Positions 34,654 through 63,668 are shown, counted from the first letter of the stretch. The stretch is DNA of 64,000 nt from Bugula neritina (GCA_964035545.1 OZ037765.1:27403504-27467503), one strand, 5' to 3'. The notes: generated by a model from the sequence alone, not told the origin. Program-made: numbers and translations.

Positions 34654-34938
<285 letters not shown>

Positions 34939-35313: not shown

Positions 35314-39253
<3,940 letters not shown>

Positions 39254-43003: not shown

Positions 43004-46000
43004 ATGATGAATCCCTCAGATGCGGTAAGCATTTCTTAATGACTAGAATATTTTGGCATTGGAATAACTCATAGTATGTATAATAGATGAACGCAATTGT
43101 AAAATTGTGGATAAAATTAGATAATGCTTGAGATTTTATCACAGGTGCTTCGTGGTGGTTATATTAGCACAAGCTTGGACCCTCCAGCTGCCATGTTCCA
43201 ACGCACAAGTATTCCAATTCCGTAGGTTTACTTTTTACTATTCTTCGTTAAATGTGATACTGAATAGAAATTCTACCTATTAGAGTTTTGAATAGCAAGC
43301 AATGTCTAACACAAAGTGCATTGATAATTTAGTTGTTAATTGCTTTCAACAGTGAATTTAATTTAATTTACTAAATGAATTTTCAGTTGATGTTGTTGTT
43401 TCATGTAATTATTATTCACAAAAATATTTATCCTATGTTTAGAGGGAATGAAATTGTAAAGTGAAATTGTAAAGAAGCATTTCCGCTAAAGTATTTCATA
43501 AAAAACTATTTATCTACAAATGGTTCTAATACAACATTTTGCTCTGTGTTTGTTTTGCATTGTGTGAAGCTAATTTCATAGGTGAACAGCTGCTGGGAAT
43601 TTTGGGTATGAATCAATTTTAGCCATAATTTTAAAATAAATTTGTTATAATTTTGCTAAAACATCACTTTACTACAATTTGGTACAATAAAAAAAGTTTT
43701 GTCACATAACTTTTTAAGTGGTTACTGTCTTCAAAATATTTACAGCAGAAATGATAATTGAGATCTAATATCGACTTATAGTTAGCAATTTACTGGAATT
43801 AGTTTAACTTTAATATTAAGTGGTTGTATTTCTTGACAGTGATCTGATAGATGATTGAGTGAATATAATTAAGTGTTTGTTGATTTTTTGCACATCTATA
43901 CATAAAATATAATGATTATGCAATGTATTGAAGCAGAAAAAAAATGTGTGGCTTGTCTATAATATGTATTATTGAGGTTAATAACATCTTTAAAGTATCC
44001 TAACTATTACAGATTTATTAGGTGAACACCTTCATAAAAAATACTATGTATCACCAAATAAATAATAGAAAAAAATTGAGATTTGCAGTAATATAAGTTT
44101 CAAGGTCTTCAATTGAGGTAAGTAAGGCAAAACTTTGTGACTGAAGATAAATAAGGGAAACATTATAAATAAGAGCTACACCAGAAAAAACAAAGAGACA
44201 TAAAAAAGTGCATGAAAAAAATATGTATTGCATAAGAAGTAAAGAAAAAAATTGTTAATGAACACACAACGCATATCAGTTTTTCTTACAAGCACTTAGT
44301 GATTAATTAGCCCAATGCACCAGAATAAAATGCGGCAGTGATGTAATGAGTCGGAGTTGAGGTAGTAACAAGATGTTAAATAAGTCTCTCACTTGGTATT
44401 TTAGATTCACAGGGACGGTGACTCACCTGCGGGTGTGCAGTGGTTTTCTGATATATGTGATGGTAAATAGGGAAATGAAGGTTATACGGAGAGCAAACAT
44501 GGCAAGTAAAACAGATGAAAAAGATGGTAGGTCATTTACTGGTTTACAAGGATATCTGGTGTAAAAGCTTAAGCATTTTGTTGCATAATAGAAACTAGTT
44601 GAAAACCATTTGAAAATTTCTAATTATGCTGCAGTAAGCTGTAAAATATTGATATTATGAATTTTTAGTTTCATCAATGACTAAATTAAATTGAGCATTA
44701 AAACAGTTTCAAACAAGCAAAACAGTACAACTTAGTAACATAACGTGAAAAACAAAACAATGTTTAAAATGTTGAGACACACTAATACTATAAACAAAAT
44801 AACAATTAAATAGTATAATAGTATAATATAATTCAATGTATATAATTGTCTCACTAACTTATCCTTGGTAACTGCACATATCTATTTATCTAATTATATT
44901 TAGTTTGTTGATGAAGTTGGACGTAGATGGTTTTTGATAGGGCATTTGCATAAAAACTAATGTGGTCATGGATTTCTAAAATTTCTAGCGGTGCAGGTAT
45001 ATGATCGGGGTATAGGTATCCTTCTTTTTTCATATAAAAAGTAGCCTTCTACGCACACATTGGTTTTCCACATTACGGTAATATACTCTACAACTGGCTG
45101 ACAAGTTTCGCCTTCAGTGCCACAGCTATTTCCCTGTTCGTTGCATAAAGAGACAGCTTGAAGAAGATATTTGGGAAATCGTCTATGTTCATAGTTGAAT
45201 GTATAAGCCCTGTATGTAAAAATATAGCATATTAGATATTGTTACACATTATCAAACATATTTCATATTGTGGTATAATTTATGGCATATTACGTTTTCT
45301 GGTATAATTGTATTGAAATACTTGAATCTAGTAATATTGTATATTGTATTATTAAACTTAAACATTAGTATCATTCAGCTCCATCAGTTATCATGTAAAA
45401 CTCCTTCAGAATGTCACTCAGCGAAAGCTGGGGAAAGTTGAATACTAGGATATTTATTTTAAACAAAAATTCAGATAGTTTCACAACCTAAAATCCACTT
45501 TACAATACTTGTTATAATTTTTATTTAGATAAAGTTGTTGAGTAATGTTTTTTTTCAAATAACTGTTAATACTTTATATTCCATGCATTGCGGTTAACAA
45601 AAAGAACTTTTCAGCCAGCTTCTGCTGTCGCTAGTTTAGAACAAGACTATGACGTGGTGCCATTCAACAAGAAAATCAACTTATATGCATATTCTTCAAA
45701 GTTCTTTTGAAATTTAATAATAAATATTAAATATATAAAAGGGCTATCAAGATTTTATAAGTAGTAAAGACATCGTGGCCACTGACTGCATAATATGTAT
45801 GTGTTAGTACTCAATTTCACTTACCATGGGCATGTTGACCTTTCATTGATATCTCCAGACCTATTTCTTGCTTCGCACTGAAATTCAGACACAATTGTTG
45901 TGTTGAACTGTTGAGGGTGCCTTTCCTCCAAACTTGCTTTGTCCTCAGCATCTAGCACAGTCAAGTCTGTGGGTATTTAAAAAAAATTAATTAATTTTTG

Positions 46001-49000
46001 GTTGCATTTTTTATACATTCAATAGCTAAACTTGCATACAGAAGAGAGTGTTTGTCAGTTTTTTCTTAAGTTTCACTGCCCCAATTGCTATACATTTTAC
46101 AGTCTGGGTGAAAAGAAGACTAATCATAAAAGTTATAAGTGTTCTTAATTTTTTTAATATGAGCTGCTTGTGGTTACAAGTTTAATTCAGCAACTTTACC
46201 CAACTTTTTCGTAAATTTTTTGTTTTATGAAATGCAAAAGCTGATTCGCAAAAAAGGCTGTGGATATATTTGGCCAAGTAGCTAATATCACACTTTGTTG
46301 ATGTGTAGGAAAATATGGTGTTTTACATAATACATGCTCAACTATAAGATGATAAATTGTTATAAATCAAACATTTATAATTTGCATGCATTGAAGTCCA
46401 AATACTGCAATCTTATTTCTAAACAATATGCGGAAAAAATTCATCCACTGCATCCCTAAACCAGTCTGGTCTTATGATACAGTGTTCGCTTTACTTTATA
46501 TTGCTAAACTATGTTGTGCAAGTACACCTCCAACCTGCAGGTTTATTAGTTTCAGTGAAAATAAACTACATTTTGTGCAGTTTGTGTAAAATGCATTTAT
46601 GTAAAATATATATTACATTTTTAGGATAAGGTTTAAAAACAACGGCAACAGTACACACGTTTTTAAATTTACTTCACTTTACTCAATTTAAGCAAAAAAT
46701 ATACTGACCTATTATAGATGAGGCAACTCCGGTCATGTCGTGCTTAAATAACAATTTTAATAATTGCTGATCTGTTAGCTTCTTACAGTGCCCATATGCT
46801 TCCACAATGCATAAAAAGGCGAATAAAACACCCACTAAGTATCTTCTCATTCTGCTTATGTTTGTTGAAAAGTTAAGTTGACCACAAATGTTTGAGAAAT
46901 TATCCGTGTGCCTTTTTATATGCTGCACAATTTGCTCTTATATAATGGGTCTAATTTATAAATACGTACCCACCCAGAAGTATTTTCGATTTGCTAAAAT
47001 TTGCTATGTAATATTATTATTATTGGCTTAAATTTGTTTGTCTGCAAGAAGTACTTTGAATGTGAAATGCTAATAGAGGAATTTGTGGTTCCCCATTCTT
47101 GATTCTTTTGTATTTTTGTATAGGGTTCTTGGAGTTAAAGCTCAATTCTACGCAGGAAAGTTTTAATACGTAGTAACTACGCCCTTATTGCTATAAAGAG
47201 TTAAATAGTTCCTGCTTGGTAGAAACTCTGTTTAAATGAATGATGTCAATTTAAAGTTATAACGTATTGTTTATGTTTAAAGTCTCCACCTATAATCATA
47301 ATGAAAACCCCTCGTGACAAGAGCTTTTAATTGAGCTATGGGCTCTGCCTCTCACTTAACTGTGGCTGTAATTAGTAAATATTCTCATCACTAATTGCCA
47401 GAACTCAACCCATTAGCTGTGTCTTACTAGCCACTATAGTGCAGCTCTCATTGCTAGACCACTGCCGCTCCCTCAACTATGTATTATATGTTCTACATAA
47501 CTATGCTGTGATGGTATAATTTGTCTTGAGGTTCATTCTGATATTGAAAAGCACTCAAATAATGTCAAATCTGTGAATAAAATTAGAAAATAAATAAAAA
47601 ATGTGTCATAAATGCAATTAACAGTTACCTGAGTAGATACATTCTTTACTTAGCAAAGTTTTTAATCACTTTTCTAACAGCAATAATTATTGGATTATGA
47701 TTTTATAGCTGCTTTTTATTTTTATTTATTGTGTTTCAAACTTTTCACTTGAAATAAGGTTTTTTTTTAATAAAATGCACTGGTTAGTCTAATTGCTCTG
47801 ACTGCATACAACGTCTTCTTTATAAAAATATGTTCTCTCGTGTTGTTTCTCTCAGAATAAATTGATTTATGTTTGCAGATATAGAGTTTAGGGATGACGA
47901 TGTTGAGAATATCTACATGGATCCCACTGGTGATCATGTGATTATTTCCATGGCTTCAGAAAGTAATTACTATCTTCACCGCCTGTCAAAGTCACTAAAA
48001 ATACTTTCCAAGTTCTCTGTAAGTTGCAATGGGCAATGGCTTATATACTTATTCACTGGCACCTTGCCAGATATATTACACACTCTTAGCCATAGATGAT
48101 TGTACTGACCGTGTAGGTGTTGGGTTGTAGGGGCATATAATATCAGCCGTGGCTTGGAATGATGAGTGTGCCCTGAGATACACTGGCCCATTGCTAGTCG
48201 GCACAAAGAAAGGTAAGTTTGAACCAACTTTTCTTATTGATGGATCAGGAAGTTGTAGTCTGAGTGGATAGGTTGGTAGGTTTGCATCATGATTACATGC
48301 AACTGCTTTCAGTGAGAAATAACCCGTATTGTTTTTTGTATTCTATGATGTGTAATTTTCAGCTAGTCAGTAACTGGGCTATAAACTACTTGTACTTTGC
48401 CTTCTTCTGTAAATGTGCACAATATATGTCTCTCTGTATGTATGTTGATGTTTCACAGGACTTGTTTTTGAGACTTCCTTAGTTGCCAGTGAAGAAGGCA
48501 AGTTTAGAATTGCAAGTTCTGCTGCCGAGCAGTATGCTAAGCAGGTCAGCTCTATAAAGAATACATAATATCATTCATTCTATAAATAATATATAATCTC
48601 ATTCATTCTATAAATAATATATAATCTCATTCATTCTATAAATAATATATAATATCATTCATTCTATAAATAATATATAATCTAATTCATTCTATAAATA
48701 ATATATTTAATCTAATTCATTCTAGTATAACTGTTAGTGCCAGAGTTTGTAGTTGTGTGTTGTACTGTAGTTGTGTGTTGTATTGTAGTTGTACGATATT
48801 GGAGATTTCACTGTTTCTGGTCTGGCATATGGCAGAGTAACCACTGGACAGCAGAAAAGACGTCTTCAATCTCACAACATATTTATTCTTCTTGTCACCT
48901 CTGGGTATGGAAGACATCTATCACCTTATCTTTTCACTAGACAGAAACTGGGTAGTCACTAGACAGATGTATTACGCAGCTTGGTGCTACCAATCAGTTA

Positions 49001-52000
49001 TTTTTCAAGGAAAAGTTATAACAGTTTATGGTGCTTGCTACAGTTGCTTTATAAATTGCATAATCTATATTGAATAAGTTTTTTTTTATTGCGAGATATT
49101 TGTACAGACAAAAAGGATGTAATGAATGTTACAAATTGTTATAGAAAGCACCCAGTTTGGTCATCTTACGTAAAATAAAAACGAAGTCCAACTGTTATAT
49201 TTATTATACTAAATAGAGCTTTACTCAAGTTGATGCTGCACATTAATATCTGTTGAATTACATTTCTTTTATACAGATTTTTATGTTGACCTTTTAATAT
49301 AGCGAATAGTAGCCAGATTTTAACTTATACGTTATTTTGTAATATTCTTGAGCTGTTCAAATAACTAGGAAGTTTAGTTTGAATGCAACTATTTCTCACA
49401 GCTGTATTACATGACGCAACATGTATGGTTTCAGGAGGCTGTATCAGTTTTTTGGCACTGTTGGTAGCACTTTGGAAGGGCATAGCGTCTTCCAGTCAAT
49501 ATTTGAGGCCTACAAAGATATACAAGGTATGGTAGGCCTGGTCAGAGAGTACAATTAAACTGCATTACTTTCCATTTCATTGGTAAATTTTTGCCCTTTG
49601 TGATTCATTCAAGAATTTATTTGCTTAAATGTACTTCCTGGCTTTAATTTCATTTCTTTACAAAGTTACACGAAGTCTTTTATTAAAGTAATGCCAAGTA
49701 TTCACTTATCATTTTGCAATATTTGCACATTTTCCCAATTTCAGTTTACTTTATCTTCCCTTTTAGATTATGTAACAAATTTGTTGACACCAATAACTAC
49801 CAATAATCTTAAGATTGGATAAGCTATCATTCTAATTGACTCAGGTGTTCAATGTTTTTTTTATTTATATTTGTTTTTCAGCTCCCAACATATGCGTTCT
49901 ATAAGTTGTTGTAATAAATGCTAATTATAATTAATTATAATGTGTTGATATTTATAAGAAAAATGACAGTGGTAGCTCTATTGATATTCTTTCTACAAAA
50001 CAATGACTATTAGTTTGAAATTGCAATGCTAAGGCATTCTGTTTGTAGAAGTAAAATATGTGGATTTACCTGCTAACAATTCCATCAGTCAGCTGTTAAC
50101 GTACAGGAAGTCTTTAGATCAGCCAGTTCTATCGTTTGCGTGGATGGCAAGTCCCGGCATATACTGCGGCAACATTGATAATACAGTGAGATCTGGAGAT
50201 GACAGTGTTATCCTCAACCACAAGCTTATCGAGTATCAACAAGACGGGTCCAACTCCTCCCTTACAACCACGTCTCTTTTACCCAACAGCATAGCCATGA
50301 CCGAGTTTCACCTTCTCGTGCTTTCTGAGAACAGGTAACCTTACCTGTTTAAACTCAAGTCGTTATAATGTCTGTTAATTTTTAGTACAGGGTTGTTTCT
50401 CGCCGTTGTTCACCATATCCATTTTAGTCCTTTTGGGTAAAGGGCTGTGGTTTAGTATATTATTTTCTCTTTGATTAAAGCTTAAGAAAGTTACAAAAGT
50501 GTTTTTCGGTAGCTTTAAATAGTTGAAAAGAGCATACAGCCTGGAAATGTAAGGAGTCTCTTCATTTACTTGCAGGTACTAAGACTAGCGGAATTTATTA
50601 TGGTAAATTGTATTGGGGTCATCTTACCTAATTTAGTACACAGCGGAAATCTCCAGTTTTTAGCTATTTTTTACAATTTAGCTGCTAATGAACATGGGTT
50701 TTTGCCTAAAACTAGTAAAATATTAATAAATACACCTAAATAATTAATGTCCTTCTTGATTTTGCTTGATTTCCCATGTTTTTTCTTTTTTATTTAGTTA
50801 ATTTGGATTGCGGACCGTTACGAAAAAAACCGTAACGATCCGCACTCAAAAGTAGCGGAATAATTAGGAAAAAACATGGGAAAGCAAGCAAAATTGAAAA
50901 GAACCTTGATTATTTAGGTGTATTTATTAATATTTTACTAGTTTTAGGCAAAAACCCATGTTCATTCGCAGCTAAATTGTAAAAACTAGCTAAAAACTGG
51001 ATATTTCCACTGTGTACTAAATTAGGTAAAATGACCCATTGAATATTGTCAAATTCAGGTTTGATGTAATTCGTTGAATATGCATATATCATATCTTTTT
51101 ATTATATTACTTTACTGTTGGATTATTTAGAAGCTTCTGATGTGTATTCTCTTACTGGTTTATTACACATTTATAGTATGCTTTCTACATGGTGTATGGT
51201 TTATGATTTTACAGACTTAGAGTTATCTGCACATTGAATGAGCAGCAAGTTTGGGAAGATGTGTTTGACAGCAGAGACCAGGTGAAAAACATCTGGAGAG
51301 ATCCTGTTAAAGGTTATATTTGGATCAACGCCAAGAAAGGGGTTTATAGATACAAAGTAGTGCAAGAATCAAGGTATGCGACAATAAAACTGTAGACAAT
51401 AAGAGTGGGCAATGAGCAAATGTGACCCAGTGCAATATCCTTGTTCATTCAATGCAATTTTATTTCAAAACCAATTGGTTTGATTAATCGATTTTTCTAA
51501 ATGAGTTGGCTTACATTTATTCTTAACTTTTTCAAAGTCTGCACCATACGGAACCTTGTCTCTGTAATTCCAATACAGTTTTGTATTGAGTAAATATTGA
51601 AACTTGTGAATTGCTGAGTATTGATTTTAGGTGTGGCCTAAATTATTGTTGTAGAAATTTTTTCAGATAATTAATAATTTTTTATGATTAGTTTTTTATG
51701 ATAATATATAATCTGTAATAAATTTAATGTTTCATGGTCTAAATATCTGCATTTATTCAGAAACATCTGGAAGATACTGTTGGATATGAAAGAGTATGAT
51801 AAAGCCAGGTTTCACTGTGGCCAAGACCAGGAAAAGTTAGACATAGTTAACAGACAGCAGGCAAACAGTCTGTTTGAAGCAGGAAAGTAAGTGCAGCACA
51901 TTGTTCACATTGTACTCATTGGTGCCAGCCTGCACTGGGCGATTGTGTAAGCTAAGGGTAGTGAATAGTTTACCAACTTCCTACCAGTTCATCCTAGTCA

Positions 52001-55000
52001 TGACTTCGCAAGCAATGCTGCTAACGCTTTAATGATTTGGTGTTATGATATGATATGTTGCATAGCTATATTTCATGATATACATATGTGAGTTACTGAG
52101 TGAGTTCATTACCAAACTTTCTAATTGACAAAAAATGGGTAGTTTTGTAGACCAAAATATTTATTTAGGAAATAATTTAGTTCAGTTATCTATTTTTATA
52201 TAACTAATTTATAAAACTTAGGTTTACAAAGACACAATTTGTTTAAAAGTTTACTTTAAGCTGCATGAATCATTTTTGTGGCGAACAGTTTCAAACTGGG
52301 GGAGATATAAATTTTATGATATTGTTGTTGGGCTGTTTGAAATGGGCAGTCATTGTACTTTTATTGCCATTTCAACTTAAGCTTGATTTTTAACAACTCT
52401 TCCAAAACACTAGTTATGAGGGTAAAATGAATTTTAGTATAACTGTTTTTAGTACTCTGTTTGAATGTTTTCTCAGGTATGAAAAAAGTGCTCAATACTA
52501 CGCACAGACAAGAATGTCTTTTGAAGAAATCACACTGAAGTTTATTGAAGCTAATAAGGAAGTGGCTTTGAGAGGCTATTTGGAGAAAAAGCTGGACAAT
52601 TATAGGCCTGAGGAGGTAAAGTATAGTTTTCTAACATTTGTTGTTGAAATGTTGACAGCAAAGAAATTCCATAAAAAAGTAGTATAAGCTTGAAAGCAGA
52701 ATTTGCAAATGCTTTAAAAAATAAATCTTCAGAAATTAATAATATTTTGATGCACTTGTAGTGCAATGTTAGATAGAATTTGAAGACAAAGATAAGCATA
52801 TACGTAATGTATTTAAAAATAGAAAATTTCAGGTTTTGCACAAAAATGCAAACAAAATTTAGTTTATATTTTAACAATTTATATTCTGTTGGTAAAATTT
52901 GTAATAGCTTATAATGCATTATCTGTATTGTATAGTATTATATATAGTGTAATATTATGTATTGTATGTATTGTATGGTATTATATATAGTGTAGTATTA
53001 TGTATTGTATGGGATTATATATAGTGTAATATTATGTATTGTATGGTTTTATATATAGTGTAGTATTATGTATTGTATGGTATTATATATAGTGTAATAT
53101 TATGTATTGTATGTATTGTATGGTATTATATATAGTGTAGTATTATGTATTGTATGGGATTATATATAGTGTAATATTATGTATTGTATGGGATTATATA
53201 TAGTGTAATATTATGTATTGTATGGGATTATATATAGTGTAGTATTATGTATTGTATGGGATTATATATAGTGTAATATTATGTATTGTATGGTATTATA
53301 TGCCATGTATTGTGTGTTATTGAAGAATAAAGTCCAAGCTATTATGTTGGTCACATGGCTGGTTGAAATTTGGCTGAATCAGCTGGGTAAGCTGAGTGAC
53401 CAAATGGACTCTGATGGTAGCAACAAATATGAACAGGAAAGAGAGATCTTGCAAGAAGAGTTTAGACTTTTTCTTGCCAAAGGAAATATTCGGGTATGTA
53501 TCTTGGCAACTATTGGTTATCTTCTGTAGTCTGGTATTTTGCATACATTATTATAGTGCAACAATATATTATATATATACAAGCTATAGCTATCAAGTAC
53601 TAATTTTGTTACTATGAGCTCTGGTCAGTTCATACAATTCAGGTATGCAAGAAGTAGTATGTTGAAGCATGGTTGTCACCGTACATTATATTTTATACAT
53701 ACATAGTATATGTTATCTGCATATATTGTATACCGTTCACATATTTTATATGTTGTTATATGCATACAATAATATTTGCTATTTTAGTCAGTTTTGAATG
53801 AGAACAAGTCGATAATATATGATCTAATAGCATCGCATGGTGATGTAAAGGATTTGGTATTCTTTGCTGAATTGATGAAAGACTATGAGAAGGTTATCAG
53901 TCATCAATTACAGAATCATGAGTTCGAGAAAGCGCTGGAGCAGCTGGAAAGAGTGGTGAGCTTGTTTCATATCAACTCATAATTGTGAGTTTTTTCCTCA
54001 AGGTACTAATTGATTTATTTTTATAAAATACTTTTGTATGAATGAATGAAACAAAACATGTGTACATGTCTCTAGAGAACACATTTACAAGGTTATGCTT
54101 GGCTCAAAGATTGATGTGAACATCACTAATCATTACACAATGCTAAGTGAAGCAAATTTGTAAATTGGAAACATTTTACTGTGTATTTTTAAAAACAATT
54201 GTGTAATACCAAGAGTATGTTATATCAGCATTATTTTAGTTTTATTTAAACTTGATTGCTATCTTACATAGTAAATGGGCAGCTTAACTTCAAAAATGCC
54301 CGACTTTGTTACTTGATCAAATTTAAGCAGGTTGGAATTTGATTATATTTTTTCATTATTCTACTTGAGTAAAATTTCCATAATGTGTTATTCATGTTAC
54401 ATTACTAAACCCAACTGACTGGTGAACTAGTGTTTTACTCACTGTAGGGTGACGCTAGACTGGTGTACAAGTTTTCTCCCCTGTTGATGCAGCATGTGCC
54501 CAGTGCTACTGTAGATCTGTGGCAGACGTTGTCTCCTTACCATAACCCCAGAAGTCCCCCTCTAGACCCCAAGAAACTCATCCCTTCTTTAGTACAGTAC
54601 GATGTGAGGACGTTGCAGAGTGGGCAGGTAACTTCTACTACTAGTTATGATGACTATCACAATCATCTACAATCATAGTATGCATCAGTTTATTACTAGA
54701 ATAAATAGTTTACCAATTACATTCTGTGTACTGCAGCGTGTAGGGTAGAGTAATGTAGTGCAGTGTGTGTAGGATAGTGTGTGTAGTGTGGTGCAGTGTG
54801 GTGCAGTGTGTTGCAATGTAGTGTGTGGTGCAGTGTAGTGTAGTATAGTGTGGTGCAGTGTAGTGCAGTGTAGTGTAATGTAGTGCAGTGTAGTGCAATG
54901 TAGTGTAGTGCAGTGCAGTGTAGTGTAGCGTAGTGTGTAGTAACAGACAGGATAAGATTAGATATATCATGTGCTCGTTTATTATTTTAGTCAGCCTTCT

Positions 55001-58000
55001 CTCACCTAGCTCTTTGACCTTATTATATAGTCTGTTTATAATTGCAACAAAATATTTTTAGTTCCTTCTCCTCTAATGTACATGTAGTTTGCTGACAAAA
55101 AACCTTTCAATTTATTGTGCTGACAAAATAACTCCAGTAAAGTAGCCATTTAAAACAAAATACTATTTTTGTTGCTAAATTGGAAGTTATCTGTTCCTAG
55201 AGTATTTTCGTGACTTGTTTCTTTTACTGTTTATCATGCATGTGTGCATTGCTTTAGAATTGGATTTTGATTACCATTTGATGGTGTATTTTAGGTTATA
55301 TTATTTCTGTAGACTCATGATGCTATAAGATTCCTTGAATATTGCATTCGTACACTCAAGAACAAGGATCAGACTATTCACAATTACCTCATCTCACTGT
55401 ACGCTGACTTTGACCCCGAGAAGTTATTAAAGTATCTCAGAGTTCAAGGACAGGTGTGTATAGTCACTTGTACTGTACTTATCTCTATTACTGTCGCTAG
55501 TAATACAGGAGTTACTAGTAACCTAGTAACAATGCTTACTATTAACACTTTACATCAATGTCTGGTGTTACTATTGTGGTCACTAATACTGCTGCTACTT
55601 TGTATGTAGAAAAAATAAATTTCAAATAATAGTATTTTTAAAGATTTGCTAGAGTTGTATGTTTGAGACTAAGTTTTCATGTTTGAAAAAATTTCTGCTT
55701 TCAATGATTTAGGAAAAACAGAAAATTTTTATTTTAAATTTTTAGCCTAAAAAGCAGTGAAGATGAAGTTTTCAATCACTTTTAATGCAACACTCATGTG
55801 AGTTTATAGTCGCCATCCCTATGAGAACTGCTGGTTGAAAGGTTTTTTAAGCAGAAATATTTTACTGTTGTGGCAAAGGAGCAAGCATGACTGAATGCCC
55901 ATCCTAACATCACTATTGGCCTTTACTGAGCCACTGACATTGTGTTTACTAAGTCAAGGCTTAGTGCTCTCTTTAAAAAAATAAAAATTGAAAAAAGTAA
56001 TTATTTTTAATGTAATTAAAATAAAGATAAGTTTTTGTAATGAAGAATATGTTATTTATCAATCTTTAGGAGGCAGATGCTGTTAACTATGACTTAAAAT
56101 ATGCCCTTAGACTATGTTCAGAAAAGAATCTTCACAAGGCGTGTATCCACATATATTCTACTATGGGACTTTACAGTGAAGCTGTAAACCTAGCTCTAGA
56201 GGTGAGGCTATTCTTTCCCAGCTCATTTTTTCGCTAAAATAGTGTATTAGTGTCTTATTTGTAACACCTAAAGTAAAATCGCTCAAGAAATTTGGTGTTA
56301 AATTTAGCAAACAGACATGTCTCTGGCACAAGAAAATGCTCAGAAGCCTGAAGAATATGATGAGCGAAAGAAGTTGTGGCTGGATGTAGGTAAGCAGGCT
56401 TCGAACATTGTTTAGTCTCTTCTCTGTACTACTCTACTCACTACTCTATACTACTCTACTCACTACTCTATACTACTCTACTCACTACTTTATACTACTC
56501 TACTCACTACTCTATACTACTCTACTCACTACTCTCTACTACTCTACTCACTACTCTATACTACTCACTCACTACTCTATACTACTCTACTCACTACTCT
56601 ATACTACTCTACTCACTACTCTATACTACTCTACTCACTACTCTATACTACTCTACTCACTACTCTATACTACTCTACTCACTACTCTACTCACTACTCT
56701 ACTCACTACTCTACTCACTACTCTACTCACTACTCTATACTACTCTACTCACTACTCTATACTACTCTATACTACTCTACTCACTCACTACTCTATACTA
56801 CTCTACTCACTACTCTACTCACTACTCTATACTACTCTACTCACTACTCTATACTACTCTACTCACTCACTGTCTCATTGACTTTGGCTAATAATTTCCT
56901 TTCCCTTTAGCCCGCCATGTTGTGGAGAAGCAGAAGAATATTGACAGCGCAATGAAAGTTTTGAAAGACTGTGATCTGCTAAAGATAGAGGATATTTTGC
57001 CATTTTTTCCAGACTTTGTTACTATTGATAAATTTAAGGTTAGTTTTAACATAAGTTTATATGATATATAGAAATACCTGCAACTACCTTCATTGAATTT
57101 GTTTTTAACTTCTAAAAAACTGTACATTATCTTCAAAATATTTTGGCTGTGTTTCTGTTTGCTTGTGTCAGGTTATGCATGTAATATCTGCACAATGCTT
57201 GTTCTTAATCCATCACAATTCAACATTCATCCTGCAGTATTTTGTACTTGGCCTAATGGCTAATTAAGAATACTAACTCAAGCAGTTATCCGAACCATTA
57301 ACAAGTCATCTTTTGGCAAAATCTCTATTGTAACTAATCTTACTTTAAAATTTAGCCATCATCCGGGAAGCTCTGCTTATTGCTATGTTAATTCATTCAC
57401 CACTCAGAATTGTAAACAGTTGATATAGAGAGGTTGCTGAATGCATGAAAACCTCGTCTAATTTGTGTGTCACTGAATAATTAGCAGCTATAAATACATT
57501 GGTAATTCTACCCAGTCTCATTCTGAATACGGTGTTTAATGTAATTAATGTAATGAAGTCAGGTCATTTGTAACCCCACAGAGTGCGTGACACTTTCATT
57601 CACTAATCTTGTTGTCTCATTCGTTCATTATAATGTACAATTCAAACCTAAATTATGGTGTATCCTCCTTAATAAACATAACTATCAGCTATTCCAGCAT
57701 CTACTTGATAAGTGCCCACTAAAACTTCACTCTTGCATATAAGTCAGCATTAATGTTTTTATATAGCTCAGTACTTGGAATTCTAAGCAGTAATTTCTGT
57801 AAATTATATTTCTGGAGTGGTCACGGATAATGGATATTGTTAGCTATGGTTAATTCCTGATTAAATGTTAATTCTATGATAAAGTATTTGCCGGACACTA
57901 ATGGCAGTTGTGAGAAAGTTACTAGTACTACTAATAGCTTATCTGTATCCAGGAGGCCATTACCAAGTCTTTGGCAGAGTATAATGAACACATCAACTCG

Positions 58001-61442: not shown

Positions 61443-63668
61443 TTACCTGCATGCACATGATTCTACTAGCATGTCACTGTAAGTCTTCAAAACTATGTTA
61501 TCATGTTCATCATAGAACAATAGAGTTACAGGTTGCAGCTTATCGGCTACACAACAAGGCTGTGGCACGCTAGTCATTTTTTGTATGGAAGTAAATAGAC
61601 TTTGCAAAGTCGCATGGTTGGTCAAATGCTTGCCCTAAAAAAAAAGAAAGACATAAAATATGTGCAAGTGTAATAGAATAGCTTACTCTCAGTATCAATA
61701 ATGGGAGGAGCTGGTTTTGTAAAATAAACATACCTATGAATGTATATATTATACTTATTAGAGCAATTCTTCCGTAAAAATCTTGCCCACAGATTCAGGT
61801 TAGTTTACATATAAATAACCATTAAAGTGTCCACACAAGCTTTAATGGTATGTTGTCATACCTAAACCTCTTTTCAACAACTAAATGTAATTATTACCAA
61901 GAAGCTACTTTTGTAACTTGCTATACTTACATAAGAGTATGGAAAACTGCATAAACCAGAGCAATAATAAGCATCAAACTTCTTTGGCTCAATTATCCGT
62001 CTGCCCCATCCAATGTCTTCAAAATTTATTCTCAATGGTTTTCGACCACACACTTTTTGCTTTTCACTTTCGAAAATATTGGAAACCTGTGATGATTTGG
62101 ATGTTGGGAATTTATACTTTTGTTTCTTTTTCTTTGATTCTTCTTTTGGCCAGGGTAAATACTGTACTTTTGGTATTTGGTAAATTCGTTTTTTGCTAGA
62201 GAGTCTTGCATTATTCTTTAATGGAAAAGTTCCTGGTTCTAACTTTGTTGTCGTTGGTAAACTTTTAGCTAGGTCTGGTTCTGCTCTGTTTGTGGCTTCA
62301 TTGAAATGAGAGCCATTGTCAACAGAAGTTTCGACCGAGTCTGGTAACGAAGTCTCTATCTTGTTATCATGAACACTTCTCCTGAGTCTTCTGGCATGTT
62401 TGCTTGCCTTTCCAGTCTCTGGGTTAATCATGGCGCCAAGTTCTGTCATCAACTGCTCTGTGCTGAGTTTTGTCTGATTGGCAATTTGATCCATTTCTAG
62501 TGTTCTATTATTTTTAGAGTATAGCAATATAAATGGGAGCCCATGATGTTTTAGAAAGTGGGGCATGCTCACTGGTATAGCTACAGCGTCTTCATTCACT
62601 TCACTGAATCCCACCCCCAGCTTGTTGTAGGAGTTGATGGTATTTGTGCACTGCTTAACTGCCTTAGTGATATCTATCTGTTGCCAACCTTTACCACTTG
62701 GACTCAATCGGTGTCTTTGTACCAGAGTGATGTAATAAGGCGACACTTCTGATATATCTATTTGCACTGTTTTCATCTCTTCCACAGACCGTCTGTAGAA
62801 ATGTAACTCAGCTTTAGCCAGTGTCTCTCCAAGTCTGTCCAATGAATCCAAATTAAACAATATTTTGCTTAGACTTGAGCTGTATCCTGCAACATTTGAA
62901 ACATTATCAGTGCTATGCATAAACAGTATCAAAGTATATCAAAGCACAGAGTGGAGTTTAATTTCAACATTGGCTTCAAATACACACCAATTAGTTTTAT
63001 TTTAGTTTCAAGCTTTTTCAAGTAGCTTTTGTATAACATTTTCCTAGAGGAGATGTTGTATTAGAAAACATGCAAAAATTGGAGACAATGTAATATTGTA
63101 ACATTGAAAAATAAAAGCTATTGCTTATTCCCGTATGTTTCAATTTGGAAGTAATTGAAAAACATGTTATTATTTGATCTACCTAATGATAATCTGTAAT
63201 TAGAAATGCTCAGTTTTATGTTATCTGCTCATCTATAATAATTGTAATACCAAGTCTAGAAGGCACCACCTTATTGTGTCTAATATAAACACGGTGCCCA
63301 CGGGTTAGTCAGCTATCTGCTATTGAGTCTAGCTAAGTCTTCTATCCTAACTGTTGATCACAGGGATCTATAGACTTATAGCTGTGTTTGCCCGGCTATC
63401 TTTCATAATAAAAATATAATTTGCTATTCATAAAGTCATGAAATACAGTACTGGGCCACAGATAAAATCTATCAAAGCCATGATAAAGCTGCAACAACTA
63501 ACCTTTCATTGGAGAAATACATTTAATAGTGTTCAAGTCATCTTCCATCAGTCCTCTATGTCGGTATTGCTTGTAGAGCTGCTTCATTTTCCTCGGTATG
63601 GTTTTATCAGCTGAGCATATTGTAATCAATGTGATGAGATATAAAATATTTATCTTCCAATAAGTCAT
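61443..63668 (-). CDS. BMP3/GDF10-like TGF-beta superfamily ligand, ~437 aa; exons 63503-63668, 61931-62886, 61443-61634
   Basis: Signal peptide MTYWKINILYLITLITICSA. Prodomain ILFNLDSL..AELHFY..GWQQIDIT..PFILLYS. Furin site RRLRR. Mature domain CGRKPLRINFEDIGW..IIEPKKFDAYYCSGLC.FP...NHATLQS...PQPCCV...LLFYDEHDNIVLKTY.DM.VESCACR carries BMP3-type FDAYYCSG and VESCACR. Confidence 0.9.

Follow-up and report, generated by a model that had tools for sequence, protein, structure and literature searches.

A probable IL-17-family cytokine gene nested antisense in a VPS18 intron of the bryozoan Bugula neritina

A stretch of 64,000 nt of Bugula neritina DNA (GCA_964035545.1, OZ037765.1:27403504-27467503; hereafter "the window", meaning the whole stretch) carries, in one intron of the VPS18 gene and on the opposite strand, a small gene whose product resembles IL-17 cytokines. 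We interpret it as a gene of three exons that is intact, is transcribed independently and encodes a secreted bryozoan IL-17-family cytokine, a reading to which we give a probability of about 0.8. That the window gene is an IL-17-family ligand follows from its Pfam match, its profile matches, its predicted fold and its CPW and CxPV motifs. The gene occupies 44966-46850 of the minus strand and is located on chromosome 1 of assembly tzBugNeri2.1 (GCA_964035545.1) at ~27,448,469-27,450,433.

Gene model and host intron

Read on the minus strand, the segment 44800-47100 yields three exons that join in frame across introns with GT and AG ends. Their coding parts of 142, 142 and 244 nt give 528 nt, or 175 codons and the stop, and the two introns lie in phases 1 and 2. 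The features of the gene are:

46709..46850, minus strand: coding part of exon 1; ATG at 46850, end in phase 1, donor GT at 46708-7
45825..45966, minus strand: exon 2; acceptor AG at 45968-7, donor GTAAGT from 45824
44966..45209, minus strand: exon 3; acceptor AG at 45211-10, stop codon TGA at 44968-66
46914..46920, minus strand: TATA-like element TATAAAA, 70 nt 5' of the ATG; compatible with a promoter, no proof of one
44885..44900, minus strand: variant poly(A)-signal hexamers AATATA and GATAAA, 66-76 nt after the stop; a putative signal only

The original prediction, made from the window alone, had proposed these exon coordinates, splice sites and this frame, all of which were verified base by base on the minus strand. 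The motifs that it quoted (a signal peptide, RSxCPW, RFP..L..A, CxPV and a terminal xTC) were each found, and its remark that the track of open reading frames shows only exon 1 agrees with the frame at 46683-46928.

Exon 1 encodes MRR, then a 12-residue hydrophobic core (hydrophobic stretch at residues 5-16, Kyte-Doolittle mean ~3.1), then AYG before the first cysteine. This start is signal-peptide-like, with cleavage likely after AYG; hydropathy and layout are those of a secretion signal, and the same layout recurs in a paralogous locus (L002) and in a contig of a second species (L007), both described below, with which exon 1 also shares a conserved Cys-Lys...KLL motif beyond AYG. Exon 2 breaks off after INERSTCP and two bases of the Trp codon in CPW, RSTCPW thus running across the exon 2/3 joint, and exon 3 carries the bulk of the IL-17 cystine-knot domain and the stop codon; RFPKYLLQA, CQPV and a terminal YTC are present. 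The reading frame, eight cysteines and four splice sites are all intact.

A TATA-like element had been named in the original prediction as the gene's own. It is indeed present at 46920-46914, together with two further TATA-like heptamers at 46960 and 46944; as promoter evidence it is weak when taken alone, because TATAAAA is common in the AT-rich window (~1.2 per kb at 32% GC). Just 5' of their TATA-like elements, the window (TACGTA at 46963-46968, minus strand) and the second species (TGACGTCA at L007:481-488) each have an ACGT-core palindrome; such a shared palindrome may arise by chance within ~100 nt.

The host gene was traced with Pfam and with contigs of two RNA-labelled runs, X1 and X2, which come from one sample ("symbiont metagenome") and were aligned over 43300-49200; apart from the source DNA run, these were the only sequencing runs retrieved. 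Its parts around the nested gene are:

43145-43221, plus strand: further upstream VPS18 exon; the loose 5' end of an X2 contig matches 43192-43221
44405..44526, plus strand: VPS18 exon on the 5' side of the host intron, joined to exon 43145-43221; supported by RNA-contig pieces, no Pfam match of its own
44527..47878, plus strand: VPS18 host intron, 3352 nt, GT..AG; bridged by RNA contigs of both X1 and X2 (joint 44525/6 to 47878/9)
47879..48018, plus strand: VPS18 exon on the 3' side of the host intron; Pep3_Vps18, 40.5 bits (cut-off 23.1), with RNA joints

One RNA contig of 2863 nt (X2, record 8) joins host exons across the opposite-strand gene, linking 44405-44525 to 47878-48017 and then to 48787-48905. 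The VPS18 peptide reads ...DEKD at the end of the exon before the host intron and ...MDPTGDHV at the start of the one after it. Pfam Pep3_Vps18 matches the plus-strand exons at 47890-48015, 48125-48217, 50054-50335 and 51210-51359, and the two short upstream exons have no match in Pfam. The antisense nesting within VPS18 put forward earlier is thus confirmed by an RNA joint that spans the gene and by Pep3_Vps18 on a flanking exon. Since exon 43145-43221 lies upstream, the ATG at 44499 is an internal methionine and the host intron is preceded by another. Among the VPS18 introns it is the largest, as had been claimed, and the nested gene accounts for its extra length; the other introns all measure less than ~1.2 kb on an exon map that was read partly by eye. 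The stop codon of the IL-17-like gene lies 440 nt from the upstream VPS18 exon, and no repeats or transposon ends of note were found in the host intron. Elsewhere in VPS18 introns, tandem-repeat open frames occur at 56390-56907 (+; TTLLYSLLY-type) and 54710-54970 (-; HYTTLHYTA-type), which are most likely simple-sequence DNA and no genes.

Family assignment and the cystine knot

Pfam and profile searches were run exon by exon, and the IL-17 scores refer to exon 3 alone. Exon 3 matches Pfam IL17 (PF06083; curated cut-off 24 bits) with E=6.3e-4 and 20.5 bits at profile positions 7-78 of 81. The first six positions of the profile correspond to RSTCPW, which lies in exon 2 and hence outside the scored exon. 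Exons 1 and 2, each searched alone, have no match in Pfam.

Two profiles were also searched. A1, built from three exon-3 peptides (the window gene and its paralogues), retrieved 14 proteins from 1.84 billion representative proteins, the best at 1e-17; IL17 was the best Pfam family in all ten of the 14 that were scanned, and seven of the ten lay above the cut-off. Homologues from the profile search score 29.7-80.3 bits against Pfam IL17. A2, a 13-row domain alignment with the window's exon 3 as its first row, gave 25 distinct matches among the PDB sequences, all of them IL-17A, IL-17F or IL-25 (best E=4.7e-7; human IL-17A/IL-17F chains at ~5e-7 to 4e-6, IL-25 at 0.012). Homology to proven IL-17 proteins is accordingly found with A2 against PDB and with A1 against proteins. 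Against PDB sequences A1 yielded only chance matches to mitoribosomal protein S22, and among metagenome contigs it yielded 83 pattern matches, none of them a relative.

The predicted structure points in the same direction. An AlphaFold2 model of exon 3 made from A2 (pLDDT 87.6) has strands at 2-6, 14-18, 34-53 and 56-74, forming two long hairpins, and the Foldseek matches listed against PDB are all IL-17A/F/IL-25, with probability 1.00, TM 0.51-0.64 and E ~3e-3. The model has the IL-17 fold. It shares with human IL-17A, IL-17F and IL-25 (PDB 4hr9, 1jpy, 5nan, 7uwj and others) two long beta-hairpins over 78-83 columns, but sequence identity to these proteins is only 16-22%. To this we add the non-chordate signature, TCPW over the exon 2/3 joint and CQPV in exon 3; the CPW motif with its partner cysteine in CxPV is the non-chordate IL-17 type (PMC8353272; cysteine and exon passages of PMC4517768). 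The IL-17 identity first proposed from motifs is therefore upheld by the Pfam match on exon 3, by profile matches that include human IL-17A/F and by the fold match.

The knot itself departs from the vertebrate pattern. In a hidden Markov model alignment to human IL-17A (A2), the positions of Cys71 (the "AKC" cysteine) and Cys121 (the first Cys of "CTC") are taken by Ser20 and Tyr70 of exon 3, and the position of Cys123 by Cys72, whose likely partner is Cys22 or Cys29. Half of the pattern of four knot cysteines in two disulfides (human Cys71-Cys121 and Cys76-Cys123) is thus absent; conversely, Cys...Cys is found here where vertebrates have Ser...Ser. Both cysteines are missing together from 8 of 11 relatives, from the paralogues and from the window gene itself, with Ser/Thr and Tyr/Phe in their places (A2): the window gene, L002 and the public proteins P0001-P0004 have SLC...F/Y-x-C, P0007 has SRC...YTC, and P0005, P0010 and P0012 have GF(S/T)C, whereas the more canonical invertebrate sequences P0011, P0013 and P0014 keep both. 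The invertebrate-type pair of CPW and CxPV cysteines is kept, as are the other cysteines, and the mature proteins of the window gene and of the paralogue on C3 have their eight cysteines in common. Because both partner cysteines go together and the change is common to the closest relatives, this looks like the loss of one knot disulfide in the clade and not like damage to the gene.

Membership in another cystine-knot family (PDGF/VEGF, noggin or neurotrophin/Spaetzle-like) has in its favour the missing disulfide and weak, sub-threshold Pfam scores for PDGF in P0007/L007 (16.7-16.8 bits) and for Noggin in the paralogue (15.4 bits). We regard this as very improbable, given that IL17 is the best Pfam family in every member tested, that the 25 PDB sequence matches and every listed structural match are IL-17A/F/IL-25, and that CPW and CxPV are typical of invertebrate IL-17.

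By analogy with its family, the IL-17-like protein would be secreted after cleavage of the signal peptide, would form a disulfide-stabilised dimer and would signal via a protein that resembles IL-17 receptors or has a SEFIR domain. The genome has a SEFIR-domain gene at G000:C2:13469355-13470895 (+), with 40.1 and 26.3 bits in two exons; judging by this domain, its product is a candidate for an IL-17 receptor or an Act1-like adaptor.

Relatives, conserved nesting and constraint

A Pfam IL17 search of the genome (33.8 bits) led to a pair of paralogues, and a search with A2 to at least three IL-17 exon-3 loci. The pair is:

G000:C3:13708980-13709210, minus strand, and G000:C3:13719955-13720185, plus strand: IL-17 paralogue pair (L001/L002 and L005/L006), Pfam IL17

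These two copies are near-identical, inverted and 11 kb apart, and their exon 3 scores 33.8-35.1 bits against Pfam IL17, over the cut-off of 24. They are ~40% identical to the window gene per exon (exon 2: 42%, E=7e-10) and are built alike, with a signal-peptide exon ending in phase 1, an exon 2 that ends CCATG|GT in the Trp codon and an exon 3 that starts G GCx TAx; intron 2 of L002 holds a (CT)n microsatellite of ~200 nt (L002:1150-1355). On a metagenome contig, L003, exon 3 is 48% identical to that of the window gene, and the end of exon 2 and the acceptor are the same. Altogether, in the two paralogues and in three loci from other assemblies, whose proteins are 38-48% identical to that of the window gene, the exons have the same borders and phases, and this recurrence argues that the gene model is not a product of chance. 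The nearest relatives in public protein sets, P0001-P0004 and P0007, are exon-3 open frames with intron-derived N-termini, which shows that simple gene callers split such genes.

The contig that encodes P0007 provides insight into the age of the nesting. This Logan contig (L007, 1896 nt, run SRR31252258; L008 from run SRR31252259 is 98.6% identical) bears homologues of both exons that border the VPS18 host intron, at 1791-1672 and 161-36 on one strand, with protein identities of 62.5% and 64%, and between them, on the opposite strand, a complete three-exon IL-17-like gene at 633-1506:

L007, 633 to ~789: exon 1 of the IL-17-like gene
L007, 1039-1171: exon 2
L007, ~1254 to the stop codon at 1504-1506: exon 3

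All three exons have the same borders as those of the window gene. A TATAAAA stands at 510, 123 nt before the ATG at 633, and AATAAA signals stand at 1636 and 1640, ~30 nt from the VPS18 exon; the host intron measures ~1.5 kb, and the IL-17-like stop codon is 166 nt from the upstream VPS18 exon. At the DNA level L007 and the window align only over VPS18 exon C (70%) and over 32 nt at the end and donor of IL-17 exon 2 (87.5%), and these stretches keep the same order and orientation. The original prediction had pointed to the same VPS18 intron in related genomes, and in one other species an IL-17-like gene is nested there. As the nesting is shared by two divergent species, the arrangement predates their split and is old. 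The tree of the exon-3 domain lacks resolution within the clade; P0007 is therefore taken as the orthologue of the window gene on the strength of synteny and of its protein identity, which is higher with the window copy (38%) than with the C3 paralogue (30%).

Divergence between the RNA contigs and the window amounts to ~2-4% in VPS18 exons and ~6-7% in the intron, a level compatible with an origin from a sibling species within the B. neritina complex (PMC11480708). They cover the IL-17 region patchily (44791-45210, 45465-46198, 46642-47094 and 47097-47907), introns and 5' flank included, as expected for VPS18 pre-mRNA or contaminating DNA. One contig each from X1 and X2 stops at 45210, 1 nt past the border of exon 3; as a branch of spliced and unspliced forms these ends are suggestive only.

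Several observations weigh against an intact and transcribed IL-17 gene. With regard to the family, the exon-3 score stays below the curated cut-off of Pfam (20.5 vs 24 bits), and the disulfide missing from the knot is of the vertebrate-defining pair. With regard to expression and constraint, no canonical AATAAA was found between the IL-17-like stop and the VPS18 exon. The spliced joints 46709/45966 and 45825/45209, which the original prediction had named for checking in RNA, did not appear in any X1 or X2 contig, a result from the sibling lineage that cannot show absence, strand or level. Exon 3 has at least 12 differences from that lineage, 9 non-synonymous and 3 synonymous among those listed, a ratio near neutral.

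These last three points, together with an exon divergence of ~5-6% that is near the ~7% of the intron, are what would be expected of a silent or decaying IL-17 paralogue, unexpressed or neutral and retained merely through its position in the intron. The intactness of the frame, the eight cysteines and the four splice sites speaks against such a copy, as does the sibling-lineage contig (X2, record 9), in which exon 3 is present without a gap; no stop and no listed frameshift occur in that lineage. The listed amino-acid changes also spare the conserved columns: none of the nine falls at the 31 columns that are invariant between paralogues (by chance (49/80)^9, ~0.012), and seven of the nine are confined to two places, the Cys22-Cys29 loop and the tail past the last cysteine. 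This pattern of substitutions is that of an apparently fast-evolving but constrained ligand. Neutral sequence, moreover, would not survive the divergence that separates the window from L007, where a copy at the syntenic position is intact and has TATA and AATAAA signals, in a species whose VPS18 exons are only 62-64% identical. We consider a silent copy unlikely and prefer the reading as an intact, transcribed cytokine gene.

Significance of the nested gene and its neighbours

Whether the nesting itself has a function has to be considered separately. Transcription of VPS18 and of the antisense IL-17 gene might interfere with or tune one another, linking a gene for phagosome-lysosome fusion to a cytokine, as the original prediction supposed. 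The conservation of the antisense arrangement in two divergent species would be in line with this, as would the proximity of the cytokine's 3' end to the upstream VPS18 exon, with the stop at 440 nt here and at 166 nt in L007. However, nested genes are hard to move out of a host intron, so that conservation is to be expected in the absence of function as well. The genome's two other IL-17 paralogues, moreover, sit elsewhere, on C3, and no VPS18 exon was found in the flanks of L009 (P0004), L010 (P0012), L011, L012 or L003, most of these contigs being too short to decide. We hold such functional nesting to be unlikely: the nesting probably does not couple the regulation of the two genes, and would instead be an old arrangement that is passively kept because the nested gene is not easily moved out without damaging its host. 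A still wider scenario, which we judge distinctly unlikely, would have the antisense IL-17/VPS18 nesting ancient (bryozoan-wide or wider) and kept by coupled transcription, with a ligand clade whose knot-disulfide pair differs from that of all IL-17s characterised so far, implying a different dimer or receptor geometry.

In several respects the gene resembles what is known of nested genes and of IL-17 genes in other animals. As in other opposite-strand nested genes, a complete unit with promoter-like and 3' signals sits in an enlarged intron (3352 nt vs less than ~1.2 kb), and the arrangement is kept between species. Like the IL-17s of molluscs, echinoderms and other non-chordates, it encodes a small secreted protein of ~175 amino acids with the IL-17 domain at the C-terminus, has CPW with a cysteine where chordates have a serine and its partner cysteine in CxPV, and shows 6-8 domain cysteines, fast divergence and membership in a small multigene family. 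It differs from them at the positions of Cys71/Cys121, which are Ser/Tyr here and Ser or other and Phe/Tyr in its closest relatives. The three exons with an intron in the Trp codon of CPW are common to the clade of the window gene; published invertebrate layouts are described as variable (PMC8353272; cysteine and exon passages of PMC4517768), and most vertebrate IL-17 genes are three-exon genes like the one described here, according to the same passages of PMC4517768.

The survey of invertebrate IL-17 in PMC8353272 contains no bryozoan term, the cysteine and exon passages of PMC4517768 name no bryozoan ligand, and our literature searches for an IL-17 gene nested in VPS18 found no description of the pair. 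An Ensembl annotation exists for this B. neritina assembly (PMC11480708).

The window also holds other genes. A long open frame at 61874-62932 (-) contains a TGF-beta propeptide (23.3 bits) and a TGF_beta ligand match (40.4 bits, positions 2-37 of 104); it is part of a BMP/GDF-like gene, whose last exon must follow farther 3' on this strand. A single-exon gene for an LC8-type dynein light chain is located at 34669-34938 (+; Pfam Dynein_light, 148 bits), and exons of a ubiE/COQ5-type methyltransferase at 37724-38570 (-), perhaps extending to 39289 (Pfam 62.7 bits on 38322-38570).

Few cytokine families are common to vertebrates and invertebrates, and IL-17 is among them. The window gene is an additional member of this known family, and current views are not overturned by it. 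The locus gives a well-supported gene model for a bryozoan IL-17, of a kind that gene callers relying on single open frames split, and it offers a natural variant of the IL-17 knot without one canonical disulfide. The conserved nested pair could help, as a synteny marker, to locate IL-17 orthologues that evolve fast in other bryozoans, and the IL-17R-like and SEFIR genes of this animal, known for its defensive symbiosis, gain a candidate ligand.

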